Source: Tetramitus jugosus (lineage: Eukaryota > Protista > Heterolobosea). Taken from it: DNA of 64,000 nt. The stretch is from assembly GCA_937625935.1 (NCBI GenBank), contig OW569376.1:1-64000 (forward strand), in the 5' to 3' direction. The notes beneath the pieces were generated by a model, which saw only the letters and a list, made by a program, of their open reading frames with translations, was not told the DNA's origin and did not search any database. This document shows, in pieces, positions 44,770 to 54,600 of the stretch. Position numbers and translations under genes: made by a program. The stretch's first letter is position 1. Each line of letters begins with the position of its first letter.

Positions 44770-45984
44770 TTATGATGAACTACCAATCCGATTTTCAACC
44801 GTTGTTGATCGGATCTCCTTCAATTCCTCTTCGATGTGTATCGATTTTTTCTTCTTCCTCATATGGTTATTGTTTGTTTCTTTGGTTTCCGAAGTGCTAT
44901 GTCTACAAATCATCAATTTCTGAGTGTATTTCACCAAGTCAGGCATTGCCCTTGTCCACTCATAAATATCTTCGTGTGTCATTCCCTGAAGTCTTCCATC
45001 AGTGTAACCCCACTTGTACACATCCGTGAGATATTGCGCTCGTGAAACAAGTGGTCCATTGCATATCTTACTCTCTCCGTTCGATCCAATTCCGGTGACC
45101 AATGACGCAGCTTGAGCGACGACACATGAATCTCCTACAGTTCGCTCACATGTTGTTGTTTGATTGGACTGTGTTTCAACTGATGGAGAAGCATCCGTGG
45201 CAGAAGGAGAAGAGTTTGACGAATGAGAAGGAATTTCCTTTTGTTCAGTTCGGAGTCTCTCTGATAATTCTTCAATGACCCAATCGGGAACACAAGTGCT
45301 TCTTTCGTCGGGATACACAAAGCCGAACATGACAACATGACTAAAGAGAACACGCCAATGATTATCAAAGTGTTTGATGACTCGTTTCCAGTCCATATGA
45401 GGTCCGTGGCACCGAATGAGATGATTCACGTCTCCTCCGTCATATCGTTCCTTCTCCATAATGTACGCCTTGGAGAAAATCATTTCTTCGACGGGGATTA
45501 ATTTGACAGGCAGTCCGTACACGGTGCTCGGGTGAGCATGTTGAAACCAGCCTGATGTCACGGGACATGTTCCGTTTGCAGAGCTAAAAATGATATCAAT
45601 AAAATTGTCTCCTTGATACACTTTGGCCAACCAGTGGGGAAATGTCATTTCAGTTTTGTAACCCTTCTTCTCCAAAAAGTGTGTGATGAGGTCCAAATCT
45701 TCTCTCCGAGCAAAAATGTCCAAATCTTTTGTGTCACGTCTCACGCCAGTGTATCGTTCGTACGCTTGAGTACCTCCGAGTAAAAAAGGCATGTTTCCAT
45801 CGATTAACAACCTCAAGATGTCTTTGTAAAAATCGAAAGCTGCTTGTTGTTTCTCTTCATTCAAGGAAGGTGAATCAATGGGAGACGCGTCCGAGGGTGA
45901 AGGAGGAGACGCTGCCAAGTGCAGAGGAATATCAGTTTTCGAGAATCGCGAGGATTTGATTTGTTCTTGTGATGTTTGTTTCAT
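44770..45984 (-). CDS. Bacterial-type nucleotidyltransferase family protein (pol-beta fold)
   Basis: FLLGG...RDTKDLDIF, WLAKV...IDIIFSSANG, PVEEMIFSKAYIMEKERYDGGDV, SRAQYLTDVYKWGY; first ATG at 45984. Confidence 0.85.
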   Translation of the reverse strand: MKQTSQEQIKSSRFSKTDIPLHLAASPPSPSDASPIDSPSLNEEKQQAAFDFYKDILRLLIDGNMPFLLGGTQAYERYTGVRRDTKDLDIFARREDLDLITHFLEKKGYKTEMTFPHWLAKVYQGDNFIDIIFSSANGTCPVTSGWFQHAHPSTVYGLPVKLIPVEEMIFSKAYIMEKERYDGGDVNHLIRCHGPHMDWKRVIKHFDNHWRVLFSHVVMFGFVYPDERSTCVPDWVIEELSERLRTEQKEIPSHSSNSSPSATDASPSVETQSNQTTTCERTVGDSCVVAQAASLVTGIGSNGESKICNGPLVSRAQYLTDVYKWGYTDGRLQGMTHEDIYEWTRAMPDLVKYTQKLMICRHSTSETKETNNNHMRKKKKSIHIEEELKEIRSTTVENRIGSSS

Positions 45985-46264
45985 TCTCTTGTTTGATCTC
46001 TCTTTTGTTGTTCTTACAATTTTCTTTCTTGTTATCTCTGACACTTTGGTTTGTACAATTTGTGTTGTTATTATTGGTACAAATATTGATTGTATAAACG
46101 CGATTTGTGTGAGTAGTTTTTTTCTAGAAATGAACTAAGGATTACCTTTAATTCAATTTGTAAGGGAGATTTTTTATAGGTTTTTGGTTGACCTATTCCC
46201 TATTTTTGTTCCTTATCCAAAGATTCGCAGGGTTTTTATACCACGGAGAAATAGAGCCAAGAAT

Positions 46265-49200
46265 CTAAACTCTTTGGTCAATGGTAGAGATATGGGATGA
46301 TATGTCGTATTGGGGTAGTTCCTCTGTTTCCTCATTCTCTGCACTATGATTGTTCAACAGTTTCTCCTGAAGAGTCGGGGAGAGAGCAGATACAAGTTCT
46401 TCGGGAGAAAACTTGTGATTGTTCTTGTCCTCTCCTGACCATCGTCTATAAGTTTTACATTGGCAAATCATAGCAGGTCCAATCCATAGGAAATGAACTG
46501 TACCTGAGTAGATGGCATAGAATATCGGTAGGAATGTATGGAGGCGTATGTTCTGAGGTACATAGAACTCACACATCGTATAAATAATCAAGCAGAGTAC
46601 TGAGCATGAGACCGATCCCAGAATCATCATAATCCATGAATATATTCTCCACAACCACTGAACCTTGGTGCTCTTCAAAAACACTACCGAAGATCCCATG
46701 ACCTCTAAACCCTGGAATGCAATGACGGATGAGAAAATCATCAGGTAATAAAAGTGCCTGTTGAGGAGCCATCCAACGAGCACCTGAACGAAACCTCGGA
46801 GGTAATAGAATTGGTCATAGTATGAATCCGCAAATCTGGATTGAATATTGACTGATTCTCGACAAAATAAGTAGAGAGTTGTCAATACTAAGCATGATAC
46901 TACGAAATGAACTATTCCAGAGAACAACATAGAACTCTTCAAGAATACTTGTCTCCGAGAACTTTCTCTACCCTCTTTGATCCACATCATTATGATTGAA
47001 ACAAAGGAATATATGAAGACTCGGACATAACACCCTGCGATCAGTCCAATGCGAACATAATAAAATTGTTCATAACCGTAAATGTATGTCAAAGGTACAC
47101 TAACAAACTGGATCACCACACACAGAGTAGTGATGAAACAATTGAAGGAGTTGTATCTTGAGTATGAGTTCTTCATCACATCTAGCATTGTGTACCTGAA
47201 TCGCAAACTTACTACCATTTTGAATTCTGAACAGAGCGACACAGACAAAAGAGATACAACGATGGTGTTGTAAATCGTAAATTGGGCTTTAACAAACAGA
47301 GGCATGAACTTCGACGACCAGACCCCTTTCATTTCCAATATAGAAAATGCTAAGACTGCTGAAAACAACAGGGCATGAATGGAGAGGAAGAAAACATCTA
47401 TCAAATTGGTCACTATGTTCTTTCCTTTCACTTGTTTGGCTTTTCCATCATAAAATACAGTGTTCTCCCGAAATTTTAAGGTAACAGAAATCTTACCGTC
47501 TGGTCCCGTGTCTGGAATACTAAATTTTTTGGATTCTAATGGATTCACACCTAAGGGAGATAACGCCTTAATCGGTTGAAGTAGGAGAGCAGATTTCTTT
47601 TTAGATAGTTGTGGATGATCCAGTATCGGGATTTCTGACACGGGAGGATCAAGTGGTAAAGGACACTCTTCATGAGGAAACAGTGCCTGAGGGTCCTCAC
47701 TGTGAAGAGAAGGATAAATTGGTTGGAGAGGCATGCAAGCATCCGACACTGGTGACAGTAAAGGCTGATGTACTCTTTTAGAAGAAAACGAGGGAGATTG
47801 GGGAGTTTTCATCTCACCTTGTGAATTATCGACACAGGGTTCACCATCAACATAGAACATCGTGTTAATGTGTGATGGTTGTAACATTGGAGAAGCAGAT
47901 TCATTTGTGAAGTCGTCAGTTATTGTAGAAGCATGTACAATGGGGTCATCAAAGTATCTCCTATACCAGTCTTTCCCTAAATCCTGCTCTATTGCTGTTC
48001 TGAAAGCTAACTCTTTGAATTGACTCTCCATATCGTTCTTTCTTTCCTTAATATTGACTTCCAGAATTCGAGAACATTGTAAATTAGAACTAGTGTATTT
48101 TTCATCCAGCAGTTGATTGATGATGAACTCCCTAGTATTTTCATCGACAGGAGCATACTTTTCTCCTGAACTTAAAAACTCCCAGTACCTGATTAGCTTT
48201 GAGGGATTCATCTCGACCCACTCTAGCCACCTTAAAGGATCTTTCTCGGATATTCTCAATTTCCTCTCAATAACATCTACTATTCCCTTGCCCGTGGTAT
48301 CAATTATTGTTTGATTCAGAATATCGAAGTAAAGACAATTGATTGTAAAATCTTGATGAATCACTTCGTGCTGAAGGTTACATCCGTATCCCTCAATAGA
48401 AGCAGTCCGAGTATGTTTACTCTTGATGGGTCTTCCTTTGATATGAATTGGTTTGAAATCGCTTCCTATCTGAATGTCACCAGACTTTAGTAGTTTCAGT
48501 TTGGGCGTTTCTACAGCGTTATCAACTTCTTGACTGGAACTCCCGAACACAATATCGATCTTTTCAATTGCTTTGGGAACGCTACTCCTGTTCTTTTTAG
48601 ATATTGCTTCGTTGATGGCATCCTGATTGATGTGTGATTAATTATTAGAGATAATTACTACTAGGTCGGAAAAGACAATACTTCAGAAAACATACGCGAA
48701 CTGCTCCACCAACAATAAAAACTGGTACATTAGAATTCACAATATTCTGTAGTATGGAGCGAATGGTTATTCCATCCGAGTGCTGCGATTCCTGGGAGAG
48801 TAAGCAGTCCATTAACTCCGTAACTTTGTCATTCTTGTAAACTATCACTCCATGATGATCCCAAGGTTGATCAAATTGAACATAGTTATCCAAAATCTTG
48901 ATATTTGATTCCACATAACTTTCATTAATCGTTTCTGTGACAGCTCTATGGGTCAGAAATACTCTTCCGGTTGTATTCTTCAAATCATTTGGATCAATTT
49001 GATGGCCCTCGAACGTCCATGTCCGATTATCCTTTGGAAACAATATCTTGGTATTAGCTGACCGTTTCCAATCAAGAGACAAGGGTTTCAATCTCTTCTT
49101 ATCCACTCTGACGAAGCCGTAACAATTTAGTACTGGATAAGAACCAAGTGGATGAATAAGCATTGTCTCAAAGGATTAATCGAATGTTCAAAATCTACTT

Positions 49201-49629
49201 ACATTCATCATTGGGATTATTGATCAACAATTGTCCATGGTAAAACAAGTCGCGATGAACTCCTGTTGTTATGTCATTGGAGAGACATTCGACCTCTTTT
49301 TCGCAGGGATGGTGAAACTGAACAATGTGATTTTCATCAGATTGGTGAGGACAGTACAGTCCGTGAGTGCATGAATGAACTACTACTCTCGTATGAGAGG
49401 AATCATTGACGAGAGAACACTCGGACCCATATTTACAATAATGCAAGTAGTTTCTTGCGTGGCCACTGTGACCGATAAGAGGACACTCATTCCCTTGAGG
49501 GCACATGTGAAGAAATTGATGGGCATGGGCTTCATCACTAATCAACAAACACTCTGTTCCATGTTGACACAAGTGCTTGCTTGGACATGACTCATTTTGG
49601 CACGTCAATGGATGAGAGCAAAAGTCCAT
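46265..49629 (-). CDS. Three-exon fusion (1073 aa): five PBZ-like CCHH zinc fingers + CCA/poly(A)-polymerase-type nucleotidyltransferase head + multi-pass membrane domain
   Basis: Exons 49629-49203, 49132-48696, 48622-46265; introns GTAAGT...CAG (70 nt) and GTATGT...CAG (73 nt) join in frame and restore VFIVGGAVR|D; also DFTINCLYFD and IIDTTGKGIVD; roughly 9-10 hydrophobic helices at the C-terminus. Confidence 0.85.
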
Positions 49630-49878
49630 GATTCAATCTTTTCCTAAATTTTTCTGTTCGTTTCTCTCGCAAGCTACCGTTCACACGACCAAAAACATCC
49701 GAGTTCTTTCCAATCTGCTGTAATGAGCTACGTCGCTTTCTTCACCGATCGTAGAAAACCGTTCGAAGGTTCCACTCAAAAATCGCGAGAGTGCTTGGCG
49801 CCCTTTTTCCAGCTTGGCGCCAAACACAAAAATCACGACATACACAAAAACAAAAAACAAAAACAAAAACCGAAAAAC

Positions 49879-51576
49879 ATGCCACAACTGCTTCGAACTT
49901 TGCATCTCATGGAGCAGCAACAACAATTGTTCTCCTCCCTTGATACTTCCTCCTCCAATCATACCAACAATAATGACAAACATCACCATCATCGTCATCA
50001 ACAATCAGAGAATGAATCATCATCTTTGCATCATGACACTATCGTGGACAACAAGGAACTTTTAACAAATTCCACTTCACCTCGTTCCTCTTTAACAAAC
50101 ACGACCCAACAAAAAAACAAGAGTAGTCATCACAAGAGTCATCATCACCATCATCATCATCATAGTCATAGTCATGGTCATGGTCATCATCATAAACACA
50201 AGAGTGGATCATTGAAACGTGTATCTTCATCCAATCATGTACCCATCACAGGTCATAGTGAACTTGGGGGAGAGGGTATTGCACCAACATCGCCAACATC
50301 GCCAACTTCACCTTCACATCATCATCATGCATCATCATTTTCACATCATCTAGAGTCATCATCATCATCATCTTCTCCTCTTCCTCCAATGAGAAAACGT
50401 GCCATGACAGCGACTAGTATGCTGTTGGATAGGACGAGTCAATCTACAAGTCTCACATTCCTTATTCTGTTGATCACTCATGCAGTGTTCATTTCTCTAT
50501 CGTGCATCATTGGTGTTTCACTGTTTCGACATTCTAGAGGACAGGAAGGTGATGTCATTCTGTTTCACTTTTACAATTTTAATGAACTGTTTTCGTGGAG
50601 AAATTTTAATCCACTCATGTATCAGAGTGTTCACTTTGATATGGATCGAGTGTTGAACAGTGGAGTCGATGGAAGTTTTGAGATTCGAACATTGAAGAAC
50701 AATCCGACAGTGAATCAGAATGCGAGACACTTGTACGCGTTAAACTATTCAGAGTGCAATCAGTTGAATCGGGGTCAAGATTTACAGTATTGGGCATTTT
50801 TCTTGATGCCTGGTTCGGAGTTGAAATTGAATTATGAGTTGTATTTTGCAGAGTTTGGATCGGAGATGAGATTGGCGATATTGGAGGGAACAAGAGGGTT
50901 TGACTGTTGGATGAAACAGGCGTCATTCTCTGGAAAACAACGATGTGCTCAAGTAGACACATTCCTGTTAACTGGAAGACCTGATATAATCACAGTGTCT
51001 GTCATAGGTGATGGAACTGACAACAATAATGATGATGATGACGACGACGACGATAATGGGGATTATGCAAACAAGGTGCATCTATCGAACAAGTCGTCTG
51101 ATTTGCGTGAAGATGATCGCAATTTTCTAGTGACGACTCAAGGCTATGGACGACCATTGTTCTTCATTGTCTATTTTGCAAGCAAGGAACACAACTATAT
51201 CGCTTCTTGTTCCCTATCGTTTAAGTTTAATATGACCACTTTTGATGAACCGGATCCGAGTAATATCAAGGACACATGCCTCGTTACTACTTCATCAAGC
51301 TGTGACGTGTCTCGGTCTCAAACTGTCATGATTACCGCTAGGACTGCATCTGGTGAACAGGCTGATAAGAGAGGACAGATTGTATCTTATTCGTTCAATA
51401 GGAATTCTCTCAATCTATTTGCTCTCTCCTCGATACCGTTGGTCGTTCTGTTACTGATCGATACTTTGGTTGGTATTGTATGGGCTGTTCGATTCTGTAG
51501 GTCAAGGTCATCATTCAAGAAAAGTTCAATTATCACGATCAATGCAGAAGAATCAAGCGCACTCTTACAAAGTTAG
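49879..51576 (+). CDS. Two-TM membrane protein with APD1-4-like luminal domain and His-rich N-terminus
   Basis: Poly-His/Ser N-terminus, two TM helices, motif QYWAFFLMPGSELKLNY; no C-terminal RING. Confidence 0.6.
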   Translation: MPQLLRTLHLMEQQQQLFSSLDTSSSNHTNNNDKHHHHRHQQSENESSSLHHDTIVDNKELLTNSTSPRSSLTNTTQQKNKSSHHKSHHHHHHHHSHSHGHGHHHKHKSGSLKRVSSSNHVPITGHSELGGEGIAPTSPTSPTSPSHHHHASSFSHHLESSSSSSSPLPPMRKRAMTATSMLLDRTSQSTSLTFLILLITHAVFISLSCIIGVSLFRHSRGQEGDVILFHFYNFNELFSWRNFNPLMYQSVHFDMDRVLNSGVDGSFEIRTLKNNPTVNQNARHLYALNYSECNQLNRGQDLQYWAFFLMPGSELKLNYELYFAEFGSEMRLAILEGTRGFDCWMKQASFSGKQRCAQVDTFLLTGRPDIITVSVIGDGTDNNNDDDDDDDDNGDYANKVHLSNKSSDLREDDRNFLVTTQGYGRPLFFIVYFASKEHNYIASCSLSFKFNMTTFDEPDPSNIKDTCLVTTSSSCDVSRSQTVMITARTASGEQADKRGQIVSYSFNRNSLNLFALSSIPLVVLLLIDTLVGIVWAVRFCRSRSSFKKSSIITINAEESSALLQS

Positions 51577-51687: not shown

Positions 51688-54600
51688 ATGAGCTCTACAT
51701 CAGAAGATTTACAACTTTCGAGTGATGGAGTGGAGGATGAGAAGAGAGAGCTTCCAAAGGGAGTAGTTGAGAAATTCTCTGGCTTTGTTTGTTCTGTTTG
51801 CTCGCTGCTTATTGAAGCAGACGCTCTTGAGCTACACATGTTGTTTCACGACAAGTATAGCCCTGAGATCAAATCATTCCTGACACAAGCAAAGTTGCCT
51901 ATTTTGTTTGTTCAGAAAATTCAATCACCGACACCATCCATCGATGAACAATATGCTACCTCTGAAACAGTAGAAGGTAAGGGAATTTGTTTATGAATTT
52001 TTACTCATGGATTCTTCCTGAACAGAACTTATCATTCGATTTTACAGATATCAACATGCCTTCATACAGTGTCGATTTGGCAATGGATTTCAAGGAAGGT
52101 GCTTATGGCGTTGTTTTCGCCAAGAGAGACCCAAAGTTGTTCTTCGACAAATTAGACAGTTCTCAGAGCTTTAGTTCTCTGCTTCAAACGGTTGAGATCA
52201 GTAATAATGTGAATCCTTTTGAATTCTTAAGAAATTTTATCTCCACGACATTTGAGCCATACTTTGATTCAATCGAAAAAAAGAGGTTTAAGGAGAAGAA
52301 CGGAATTTCTGCTGTCACTGAAAGCATGGAGTCCCTAAAGCTAGCTTTAGAGCAGTGTCAAAATAAGTTTAAAATTCCTGAAATTAATATCCTGGGATAT
52401 GTTCATCCCAAGGTGAAAGATATTATCCGAGACAATAGCAATCTCAATGATATTGAGGATTTGATCAAGGGTGAATCTAAAATTCTCAATGAGATGGGCA
52501 AGAGTTTGCAAGAATGTGCACTCGAGATCAACAAGTTAATTTCGCCCAGTGAGACCACATTTCATAGTGTTGTGCAGGAAATTAACTATTGGGAAAGTAT
52601 GGAGAAAGCTCTGAACAATCTCGATATTCATAGACAACACACCCAAATATTGTACACCCTCAAAGTGCTAAAGGAATACAACCGAAAGATTCCTGTTAAT
52701 GTATGGTTGTCATTACCGATTGAGGATGCATTGAAAAACGCGAGGAATTGCTACTCTCTGCTTAAAGATATTCCTATTAATGATATGTTAACGGCAAAAG
52801 AAATTGATAAGGTAGTTACTGCCGTGGAGGATACATTTAAGCAATTGTCCAAGATCAAAAATAATGAAGTAGGAAACATTTCAAATGTAGGGAATTCGTA
52901 TCCGGCAAGAGGAGCTCTTTTGGTGGAAGCAATTTCTCATCATGTACAAGACAAAGCATTAGACTTACTTCGACCGATGCAATTAATGAAAATGGATTTT
53001 GAAAACTTTGAGAAGGTTATAGGACAAATCAACGAGTTATTTACAAGTCTTAAACATGGAGTTCAAAACTTTGAGAAGATATGTATTGTTATTGCGAAGA
53101 AGATGAATATCACATTACCGTCCTTCACAGACAAACTAGAATATGTATCACTCAAGAGGAGATTAGATGAAATGAGGAATACTCGCGCTGCTCATGAACA
53201 ATTAAGATCAGTGAGTTCAAGAGCAATATCCAGTAAGGATGGAACTAGTTCTGTTGATATTTTGAATCAAGTCGACAAGGCTTTTGAAGATCTTCGAAAT
53301 TTGAACAATAAGGTTCTAGATCTTGGTGCAGGTGAGTGATGATTGATTCACTATTTTGATTTTGTTTATCAGGGAGGTTTCTAACACATTTTTGAAGAGG
53401 GTGCTCAATTGTGGAGAACATCGTTGAAGTCGTATTATGAAAAAATTGATAGCGTCGAAAGTAAAATCGTTCATATTTTAAAAGAGAAATTGAGCAGTGC
53501 AAAGAGTGCTAGTGAAATGTTTCGAGTCTTCTCAAAGTTTAATCCTTTGTTTTACATGCCAAAGGTTAGAAGCGCAATTAGCCAATTTCAAGATCGGTTA
53601 GTCGACAAAGTACGAGAAGATATTACAAGCCTTGAATTAAAGTTTAAAAAACACTACACAGCATCCGAGGCAGAGCGGATGAGTCAACTTCGTGATCTGC
53701 CCAATGTGTCTGGAGCGATCATCTGGGCTAGGCAAATTGAAAAACAACTCGATCTATACATGGGAAGAATAGATAGTGTTTTTGGCAATGGATGGGATAG
53801 ATTGCGAGATATGCGACAGTTCAATCATTTCTGGCTCCTGAATGACAAGTTATCTGACTTTATGGGGATACCAATATTTAAATTAGAGCATAAAATGTCT
53901 TTAAACTCTGTTTTAAAGTCAGATGTAAAACCAGAGTTGAAGGGCACTGCGCTCGCATTAGCATTCCTTGAACTTGTTTATCCAGATACAGAGAGTCATT
54001 GGAAGATTATGTACAACGAGAGTATGGATGCACTGCAAAAGGAACAACGGAAATTGAACATTAACATCAGCTTGCACAGCGCTGCTTTGGACATGCTCCG
54101 AGAGGAGCAAAATCTTGGGCTCAGACACATGGAAGAGCTGAAACTCAGACAAAAGGCCGAAAAACTTCGCTCTAAACTTCAGTTCAATATCAATGAGCTA
54201 CTCAGCAAGTGGAATGTTGACATCTTGAACAAGATTCCAAAATGGAAGATATTTGAAATGTCGAAGGATGAAGTTAGTGTAAGGGGATTTGTGTTCGATG
54301 TAGTGAAAAATAAGAACGATCTTTGGGAGCTTCGCGTGAATTTTCATAGGGATATTGGCAATTTGATTAAAGAGGTTCGTACACTCACGAGTCTCGATAT
54401 GGACAGAATGATTGATGTTAATATACGAGGAATTATTCTCGAGGCATGTGATATCTACCCGTTAGCAGTTTCGTTAATCGAAAGCGTCAAGACATATAAT
54501 CGTGTTCTGGCTTCCCTGGATGATTTTGTTCAACCTTTGGCTGCTCGTGAGATCAAAACAATTCAGACCAAACTCTCTGAAGGATTCAACTGGCCGTGGA

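Follow-up and report, generated by a model that had tools for sequence, protein, structure and literature searches.

It is proposed, with a probability of about 0.6, that the gene at positions 46265-49629 of OW569376.1:1-64,000 (minus strand), from the heterolobosean amoeba Tetramitus jugosus, encodes a dead module of zinc fingers and a nucleotidyltransferase (NTase) that was repurposed to serve an orphan membrane domain. The whole stretch of 64,000 nt is called the window here, and all positions are those of this stretch. The product would be a multi-pass membrane protein of 1073 residues, whose first ~660 residues lack a signal peptide and are predicted to be cytosolic and to carry six zinc-binding modules. 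The N-terminal half would descend from a protist protein family in which an array of fingers of the poly(ADP-ribose)-binding zinc finger (PBZ) type is followed by a middle domain of ~120 aa and a class II NTase with the signature GNPxKLLRYWKF. In a small heterolobosean subclade, this module would have been fused through a disordered linker to a membrane domain of 8-9 helices. The early-branching protein P0002 would represent the state with intact enzyme motifs and basic fingers. In the lineage of the window protein and its orthologue, five conserved residues have been replaced (the first Asp in DxD, Glu in EGK, Asp in NxD, Arg in RD, and Gly in GNP), and the finger array has turned from net basic to net acidic with every zinc ligand kept. 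Nucleotide transfer and the binding of poly(ADP-ribose) (PAR) would both have been lost. The zinc-stabilized dead module could then serve in the cytosol as a scaffold for regulation or for binding a partner, perhaps with a nucleotide still held in it, and the main functional part would be the membrane domain, as a transporter, channel, or receptor of unspecified type. Constraint on the gene continues, with open exons, zinc ligands, and fold motifs kept in both the window and its orthologue.

Among 5.8 billion clustered proteins, the sole close homolog of the window protein is P0001, which shows 51% identity and is encoded on the 7.7 kb Logan contig L001; it is treated as the orthologue and designated the L001 protein. 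Another relative, P0002, consists of 973 aa and includes the whole architecture in one uninterrupted open reading frame (ORF) on the unannotated, eukaryote-like contig Ga0606064_0073 (72.5 kb; JGI 3300062347). All searches and fold predictions were run exon by exon, and the intact NTase head spans the end of exon 2 and the start of exon 3. The identity between the window and L001 is 53% in exon 1, 52% in exon 2, and 53% in exon 3. The exons map in order onto P0002: exon 1 to residues 1-133 (42% identity, e-value 8e-40), exon 2 to residues 153-292 (36% identity, 6e-30), and exon 3 to residues 307-971 (9e-99). A family search with a HMMER profile of exon 3 and its orthologue against 1.84 billion representatives revealed 229 proteins with e-values of 1e-3 or lower, the best 150 of which were listed. 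No other family member was found in the 26.35 Mb genome of the source organism, and the organism thus appears to be without an active paralogue.

The membrane domain (46448..47422, minus strand; exon 3 residues ~401-725) was recognized by hydropathy and with AlphaFold2 (AF2). The original prediction, made from the letters of the window, had described a low-complexity Pro-rich linker followed by a multi-pass membrane domain, as is found here, although its ~9-10 transmembrane helices exceed the 8-9 counted in this analysis. The linker (47423..47917, minus strand; exon 3 residues ~236-400, ~165 residues in the translation) is rich in Pro and Ser and cannot be aligned with its counterparts, which are Arg-rich in L001 and Ser/Thr/Pro-rich in P0002. 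The AF2 model of the membrane domain includes 9 long helices, with a mean predicted local distance difference test score (pLDDT) of 53 and a predicted template modelling score (pTM) of 0.47. Exon 3 residues 607-650 may form one helix or two, and the side of the membrane that the C-terminus faces depends on it. Segments rich in Lys and Arg lie before helix 1, after helices 2 and 4, and after the last helix; under the positive-inside rule, this placement fits a cytosolic N-terminal half. The C-terminal tail with the stop codon (46265..46447, minus strand) shows the residues W-S-G-E..H-K-F-S-P-E-E-L..L-S-P-x-L-Q, conserved between the window and L001, and is absent from P0002, the ORF of which ends just past the last helix.

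The membrane domain is the best-conserved part of the protein, with 63% identity to L001, 35% to P0002, and 37% to the fragment P0006, while the soluble parts of the window protein and the L001 protein are 51-53% identical. Polar residues in the predicted helices are kept at 35% identity (N-L-I-D, Y-N, I-Q..V-S-x-P, I-M-M-W-I-K, H, R-G-F-V-Q, Q-G, and G-S-x-S). The domain has no Pfam or NCBIfam match, and no relatives of it beyond P0001, P0002, and P0006 were found among the best 150 of the 229 family matches or in word-indexed searches. It appears to match no known family or fold, and as the model is of low confidence, the novelty of the fold does not follow. The channel- or receptor-like effector of the original prediction likewise has no sequence or fold match behind it.

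Several leads on the membrane domain were rejected. The Atlas feature search returned weak ones, hypothetical proteins and TMEM117 (0.78), with scores of at most 0.82. The rows of G-protein-coupled receptors from Foldseek against PDB had e-values above 0.1 (best 0.12) and template modelling (TM) scores of ~0.2 on a model with pLDDT 53, and are meaningless, as are the results of the Atlas shape search (TM at most 0.36 by query). An internal repeat was not significant in the alignment of the two halves with hhalign, where a 20-residue similarity between helix 1 and helix 7 had a probability of 6.6%. In that alignment, helix 1 (47320-47380, ..AVLAFSILEMKG..) and helix 7 (46700-46760, ..SVIAFQGLEVMG..) agree at 40% over these 20 residues, perhaps by chance or as a trace of internal duplication.

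The membrane domain is probably more than an anchor. The alternative is that a dead NTase/finger scaffold is displayed on the surface of an organelle and recruits a partner, in the manner of the mitochondrial MiD49/MiD51. A pseudoenzyme with its fold and zinc ligands preserved would suit such a role, and MiD51, a membrane-anchored dead NTase-fold adaptor that binds ADP, is a precedent. It is still an unlikely explanation, since 8-9 helices are seldom needed for an anchor, the membrane domain is better conserved than the soluble parts (63% against 51-53%), and polar residues in its predicted helices are kept across proteins of 35% identity.

The loss of the enzyme is indicated by the NTase itself. 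The NTase head starts at the end of exon 2 (48696..48773, minus strand), a stretch that ends in GGAVR of motif A, and PF01743 begins at the equivalent point in the relatives. The rest of the head and a family-specific neck (47918..48622, minus strand; exon 3 residues 1-235) were recognized through PF01743, TIGR01942, 9ns2, and the family alignment. The exon 3 part matches the C-terminal half of the PolyA_pol head PF01743 (model positions 75-126) with 26.1 bits against a cut-off of 23 (e-value 1.2e-5), and it matches NCBIfam TIGR01942 (pcnB) with the e-value 2.8e-7. The best solved relative by sequence is the PDB entry 9ns2, "tRNA nucleotidyltransferase cca1" (e-value 4.9e-6). The class II motifs GGAVRD, DFTIN, and IID..G.G..D had been recognized in the original prediction, and they are present; the motifs of the window protein read GGAVR|D, KID, HQD, DFTIN, and IIDTTGKGIVD. 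Upstream lies the family-specific middle domain of ~120 aa (48774..49132, minus strand; exon 2), which shows the pattern W-x-R-S ... G-x-x ... T-G-x-V ... Q-P-W and is 52% identical to L001. It matches residues 268-408 of the Naegleria lovaniensis protein P0009 (e-value 2.9e-10), and no assignment was obtained for it in Pfam, NCBIfam, or Atlas.

In an alignment of 19 relatives, the motifs K-D-I-D, E-G-K, N-x-D, [YC]-R-D-F-T-x-N, Y-D..N....D, G..D, L-R-I, and W..G-N-P-x-K..R-Y define the clade-invariant positions, and KDID, EGK, NxD, RDFTxN, and GNPxK show at least 85% conservation. The window protein fails at the clade-invariant KDID, EGK, NxD, and RD, all four of which are replaced, and so does L001. 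Among the 19 relatives, 18 have D-[IV]-D for DxD and one has D-L-D; the window has K-I-D and L001 has N-V-D, with KDID as a whole replaced by EKID and VNVD, respectively. EGK is replaced by KGR in the window and QGR in L001, the Asp of NxD is replaced in both, and motif B, RRD ([YC]RD in the clade), is H-Q-D in both. Motif D, EDxxR, is not kept in any of the clade, all of which has G-N-P-x-K at this point; the Gly of this motif is replaced in MNPSK of the window and N-N-P of L001. P0002, with the same membrane domain, keeps all conserved catalytic motifs.

In all transferases of the Pol-beta type, the first Asp of DxD binds metal and is required for two-metal catalysis. Because this position is K in the window and N in L001, no new catalytic residue is fixed there. 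The window protein and its L001 orthologue are very probably pseudoenzymes, as judged from the alignment of the 19 relatives, and it is quite likely that catalysis was lost. The original prediction had pointed to the altered key residues KID and HQD and to a possible pseudoenzyme, and in this it was right.

The fingers have changed in parallel with their zinc ligands intact. Exon 1 encodes five tandem C2H2 fingers of the PBZ type (49237..49569, minus strand; residues 21-41, 43-63, 65-85, 87-107, and 109-131), which were delimited by repeat alignment and have a period of 22 aa and the consensus C-x-x-G-x-E-C-x-L-x-x-D-x-x-H-x-x-x-F-x-H. All five units have C-x5-C and H-x5-H. The spacer between them is x7 in four units and x9 in the fifth, which also has E for the Gly; these are the five Cx2Gx2Cx7Hx5H repeats, the fifth degenerate, that had been noticed before. 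Gly follows Cys1 in four of the five units, and an aromatic residue precedes His2 in four of the five. The array is preceded by an N-terminal CCCH-like knuckle, C-x5-C-x4-C-x3-H (49573..49620, minus strand; residues 4-19), which has no Pfam match and in which C4, C10, C15, and H19 are invariant among the window, L001, and P0002. The knuckle was absent from the original prediction. All 24 ligands, 20 in the fingers and 4 in the knuckle, are invariant in L001.

The window fingers have the same spacing as the consensus published for PBZ, [K/R]-x-x-C-x-[F/Y]-G-x-x-C-x-[K/R]-[K/R]-x-x-x-x-H-x-x-x-[F/Y]-x-H (PMC4756826). A family finger profile was built from 46 units, 41 from relatives and 5 from the window, and its matches are to be read with the caveat that the units were picked by their Cys/His spacing pattern. 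The top PDB match of this profile is the tandem PBZ of APLF (2kqb, 2kuo; e-value 3.2e-7), with both fingers matched at full length, and the next matches are CCCH fingers (e-value ~1e-3), matched at the Cys knuckle only. Twelve of the 46 units match PF10283 singly (best e-value 4.5e-5), and every other family is matched by at most two units. Finger 3 of P0002, which is orthologous by position to finger 3 of the window, reaches 22.2 bits, with the PF10283 cut-off at 22.7. Through the family profile, the fingers are judged to be of the PBZ type by descent.

An aromatic residue ([FY]) before the Gly is found in one of the five window units and in none of the five L001 units. In all window and L001 units, the three residues that follow Cys2 include no basic one, whereas the relatives have basic residues there. 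The net charge of the finger array is -9 in the window and +3 to +7 in the relatives. Since the array is acidic and without the aromatic and basic PAR-contacting residues, binding of PAR or another polyanion is unlikely, and the window protein itself is unlikely to bind PAR. In human SNM1A, the PBZ is likewise without residues critical for contact with PAR, and it may be unable to bind the polymer (PMC4756826). The sensing of ADP-ribose or PAR, which had been suggested for the window protein, does not agree with fingers that lack the aromatic and basic contacts, have a net charge of -9, and match no Pfam PBZ model.

Another explanation is that the protein is a still-active NTase, or a synthase of a nucleotide signal at the membrane, with non-canonical catalytic residues and with fingers reading ADP-ribose or nucleic acid. 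Five family-invariant positions, including the first metal-binding Asp, are replaced together, and this makes such an enzyme improbable even though the fold and many motifs survive (GGAVRD, the latter Asp in DxD, DFTIN, IID..G..D, LRI, and NPSKLIRYW). P0002 looks active with the same membrane domain, but the first DxD position is not conserved between the window and its own orthologue (K against N). A WWE domain in one member (e-value 3.7e-11) ties the family to PAR biology, but the fingers of the window are acidic and without PAR-contacting residues.

The window protein has the clade signature as N-P-S-K-L-I-R-Y-W and groups with P0002 in the tree of the module, where the three proteins bearing transmembrane helices form one group with moderate support (89/77). 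The stem leading to the window and L001 is 1.67 substitutions per site long, the two tips are 0.47 and 0.69, and the tip of P0002 is 0.24. A long stem with short tips points to a burst of change after which constraint returned, as would be expected of a repurposed pseudoenzyme. Decay of the gene toward a pseudogene after the loss of the enzyme would also account for the lost catalytic and binding residues, the long stem, and the undocumented spliced RNA. It is very improbable, given that two species at ~52% identity both have the three exons open and undamaged splice sites, that neither the 24 zinc ligands nor the structural NTase motifs have been lost, and that the branches beyond the stem are short.

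The ORF list of the window includes three minus-strand ORFs head to tail (49629-49195, 49163-48645, and 48550-46265), which had been joined by two introns into 1073 aa in the original prediction; the intron coordinates hold and have comparative support. The spliced gene consists of 142+1+145+785 = 1073 codons in three exons. Exon 1 (49203..49629), recognized from the ORF and the sequence, begins with the ATG at 49627-49629 and includes 142 codons and 1 nt with the finger array; exon 2 (48696..49132) encodes the middle domain and the start of the NTase head; and exon 3 (46265..48622) has 785 codons and ends with the stop codon at 46265-46267, all on the minus strand. Intron 1 (49133..49202, minus strand) is 70 nt long, GTAAGT..CCAG, and its removal joins the frames in phase 1. 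Intron 2 (48623..48695, minus strand) is 73 nt long, GTATGT..TCAG, and its removal joins the frames in phase 0. Its excision creates GGAVR|D, the canonical GGxVRD that forms the first half of class II NTase motif A. Neither length is a multiple of three, and if either intron is left unspliced, a stop codon follows shortly past the 5' splice site (ORF ends at 49195 and 48645). About 70 nt with the form GTGAGT...TCTAAC...AG also separate two long ORFs of a dynein heavy chain at 53335-53405 (plus strand), a candidate short intron of a similar class.

The same three coding blocks are found in L001, separated by introns GTATGT..TTCAG and GTAAGT..TACTAAC..ACTAG at identical positions and phases. The second of these includes a TACTAAC-type branch site and also splits GGxVRD. 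When the window is compared with L001, similarity sets in right at the predicted 3' splice site, with no conservation in the sequence before it. In P0002 the ORF runs straight through the position of intron 1, and P0009 (XP_044550069) matches window exons 1, 2, and 3 in order. The introns conserved in L001, the single ORF of P0002, and the collinear P0009 thus indicate one gene. The three ORFs are regarded as a single three-exon gene of the expressed type, a model supported by this comparison. The start codon is fixed by the proteins of the window, L001, and P0002, which all begin with M-x-x-C-x-x-P-L-[ST]-C. Between the ATG and the divergent gene at 49723-51576 (plus strand), which encodes a His-rich membrane protein, only ~93 bp (49630-49722) are left, and this would make a very compact shared bidirectional promoter region.

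RNA data were examined as assembled contigs, not reads, from two source-like runs and two soil metatranscriptomes (X1, X2). The two source-like runs look like DNA from the source organism, as one contig runs uninterrupted through intron 1. The soil contigs come from two RNA libraries of different studies, are 95-99% identical to the locus, and lie on the exons with a depth of 2-4. Their unspliced state may reflect DNA carry-over, pre-mRNA, or genuine intron retention. Contigs of this identity in two soil RNA libraries (46200-49700) also suggest that a close strain of the source amoeba is present in the soils, and one soil contig has a 6-base deletion at 47681 in the linker.

Several points stand against the proposed repurposing and the gene model on which it is built. 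The soil contigs are unspliced across intron 2 (48581-48801) and into intron 1 (49173-49323), and a splice joint was seen at neither intron in any RNA run examined, so that the predicted junctions are not borne out by RNA. None of the five window units matches PF10283 at an e-value of 10 or lower, neither APLF nor CHFR was matched by exon 1 with phmmer against PDB or by a 10-unit profile, and exon 1, modelled with AF2 on an alignment of two sequences, reached an unusable pLDDT of 30. The resemblance to PBZ in the original prediction therefore stands through the family profile (APLF, e-value 3.2e-7), but not through the window's own fingers, which match no PBZ model. In the NTase, DxD retains its second Asp and the fold is mostly preserved, which leaves room for nucleotide binding or unusual chemistry, and the grouping in the tree is only moderately supported. 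The role of the membrane domain beyond anchoring is deduced from how large it is, from the polar residues it keeps, and from its greater conservation, on a poor model (pLDDT 53).

Separate genes, with exon 1 as a stand-alone finger protein and exons 2 and 3 read from the ATG at 49163 inside intron 1, or retained introns with truncated products, would agree with the 95-99% identical contigs that cross intron 2 and enter intron 1 unspliced with no joint seen, but are very improbable, as those contigs have a depth of 2-4 and may be DNA or pre-mRNA, the conservation with L001 begins exactly at the 3' splice site, GGxVRD is split by intron 2 in both species, P0002 and P0009 hold the parts in one polypeptide in the same order, and the intergenic gap would be ~30 nt.

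The repurposed module belongs to a wider family of proteins, among which Willaertia magna, Naegleria lovaniensis, and Gefionella okellyi are named sources. In about 30 of the best 35 matches, proteins or fragments, a module of ~210 residues (profile positions ~11-225) lies at or near the C-terminus, and the N-termini are variable. The region upstream of the NTase resembles exon 2 in the relatives that were read or compared. All nine close relatives scanned pass the PF01743 cut-off at or near full length, and PBZ-like fingers are found in at least 10 family members. Word-indexed searches with the membrane region and the NTase region of P0002 as queries added only P0160 from Willaertia. By its sequences, the clade is a distinct, uncharacterized group of class II NTases with the signature GNPxKLLRYWKF, often with PBZ-like fingers.

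The fusion of PBZ with a class II NTase is not described in the literature searched, and a mention in earlier reviews on ADP-ribosylation is possible. The architecture of fingers and NTase is already present in public proteomes, solely as hypothetical proteins, while the form fused to a membrane domain is rare and unannotated, with four sequences among the matches listed. An undescribed architecture, as first assumed, is thus upheld for the fusion to the membrane domain, and not for the order of fingers, middle domain, and NTase, which recurs in N. lovaniensis, W. magna, and G. okellyi.

Individual members of the family show other combinations. P0028 of the malawimonad Gefionella okellyi (850 aa) has an unusually long array of at least 14 PBZ-like fingers in a row (residues ~1-465). 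P0011 (592 aa, Logan contig) has a WWE domain (e-value 3.7e-11) and one PBZ-like finger before the middle domain and the NTase, and P0007 (473 aa, JGI) has a weak IBR-like half-RING match (e-value 1e-3) at that place. The WWE of P0011 and the IBR of P0007 give a hint of a link of the NTase clade to PAR or ubiquitin signalling. Three stretches of a 7704-aa protein of Sorangium sp. So ce375 (P0031, WP_437280983.1) match the NTase profile, and in the more distant P0095 (1094 aa, Logan), an InPase pyrophosphatase domain (e-value 7e-36) is joined to the PolyA_pol head. Because of P0031 and P0095, the clade seems to reach into bacteria with quite different partners.

A bolder explanation may be imagined, in which the gene is an inactivated, membrane-fused offshoot of an undescribed signalling system. 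PAR readers (PBZ and WWE) would recruit class II NTases that work on polymers of ADP-ribose or produce a nucleotide signal, and in some amoebae the enzyme would have been wired directly to a transporter or channel of a new type in the membrane. The role of the window protein would be that of a regulator, either ligand-gated or a decoy, with a nucleotide pocket and without catalysis. This is speculative and decidedly unlikely as a whole.

The downstream neighbor (44770-46044, minus strand) encodes 424 aa with weak matches to NTP_transf_5 and DUF2204 below the Pfam cut-offs. It is syntenic in L001 (4182-5387; 59% identity) and absent beside P0002 on its contig (L004). A functional pair of the gene with this NTP_transf_5/DUF2204-like neighbor is unsupported, as the synteny is seen only in the close relative L001 and not in P0002.

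The 229 database clusters represent a sizeable, unstudied family, the close protist members of which join a CCA-type NTase to PBZ-type fingers repeatedly and to WWE once. This suggests a link of ADP-ribose signalling to nucleotidyl transfer in protists. The active-looking P0002 and the inactivated window gene make a natural pair of one membrane-fused architecture, convenient for asking what the module does at the membrane and in what way a pseudoenzyme comes about. Of greater interest as a lead is the wider family, of which the window copy is a degenerate member, and this makes the sensor proposed at first less likely. For the source organism alone, the gene encodes a lineage-specific protein for which a sensor role is not supported.

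Compared with the PBZ of APLF and CHFR (PF10283), the window fingers share C-x5-C-x7-H-x5-H, the Gly after Cys1, and the aromatic residue two positions before the last His. They differ in having [FY] before the Gly in one of five units and the basic pair after Cys2 in none of five, and in the acidic array. In the lack of PAR-binding residues, they are similar to the PBZ of SNM1A (PMC4756826). With the class II tRNA NTases and poly(A) polymerases (PF01743, 9ns2, and PcnB TIGR01942), the window protein shares GGxVRD ... DFTxN ... D..G..D. Unlike CCA enzymes, it is without DxD, RRD, EDxxR, and the tRNA-binding body and tail, and it has the finger, middle, and membrane domains in addition.

MiD49 and MiD51 (MIEF) are membrane-anchored, catalytically dead adaptors of the NTase fold, which lack zinc fingers and are anchored by just one helix at the N-terminus. 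They belong to the cGAS/OAS-like NTase subfamily, which differs from the class II of the window protein. The likeness lies in the working principle, a dead NTase fold at a membrane that serves as an adaptor or binds a ligand.

The closest systems are found in the family itself. N. lovaniensis XP_044550069 (P0009), W. magna KAL9647971 (P0004), Willaertia ABK040_005091 (P0160), and G. okellyi EP00698_P001435 (P0028) share the middle domain, the class II NTase, and NPxK..RYW in the same order, and the finger array is common to P0009, P0160, and P0028. The three heterolobosean proteins P0009, P0004, and P0160 are labelled "Poly A polymerase head domain-containing proteins" and are uncharacterized. 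All four end after the NTase without the linker or the membrane domain, and they keep KDID, EGK, [YC]RD, and GNP together with basic fingers. P0002 has the same full architecture as the window protein including the membrane domain, and differs from it in the intact motifs, the basic fingers, one of which reaches 22.2 bits as PBZ, and the absence of the tail.

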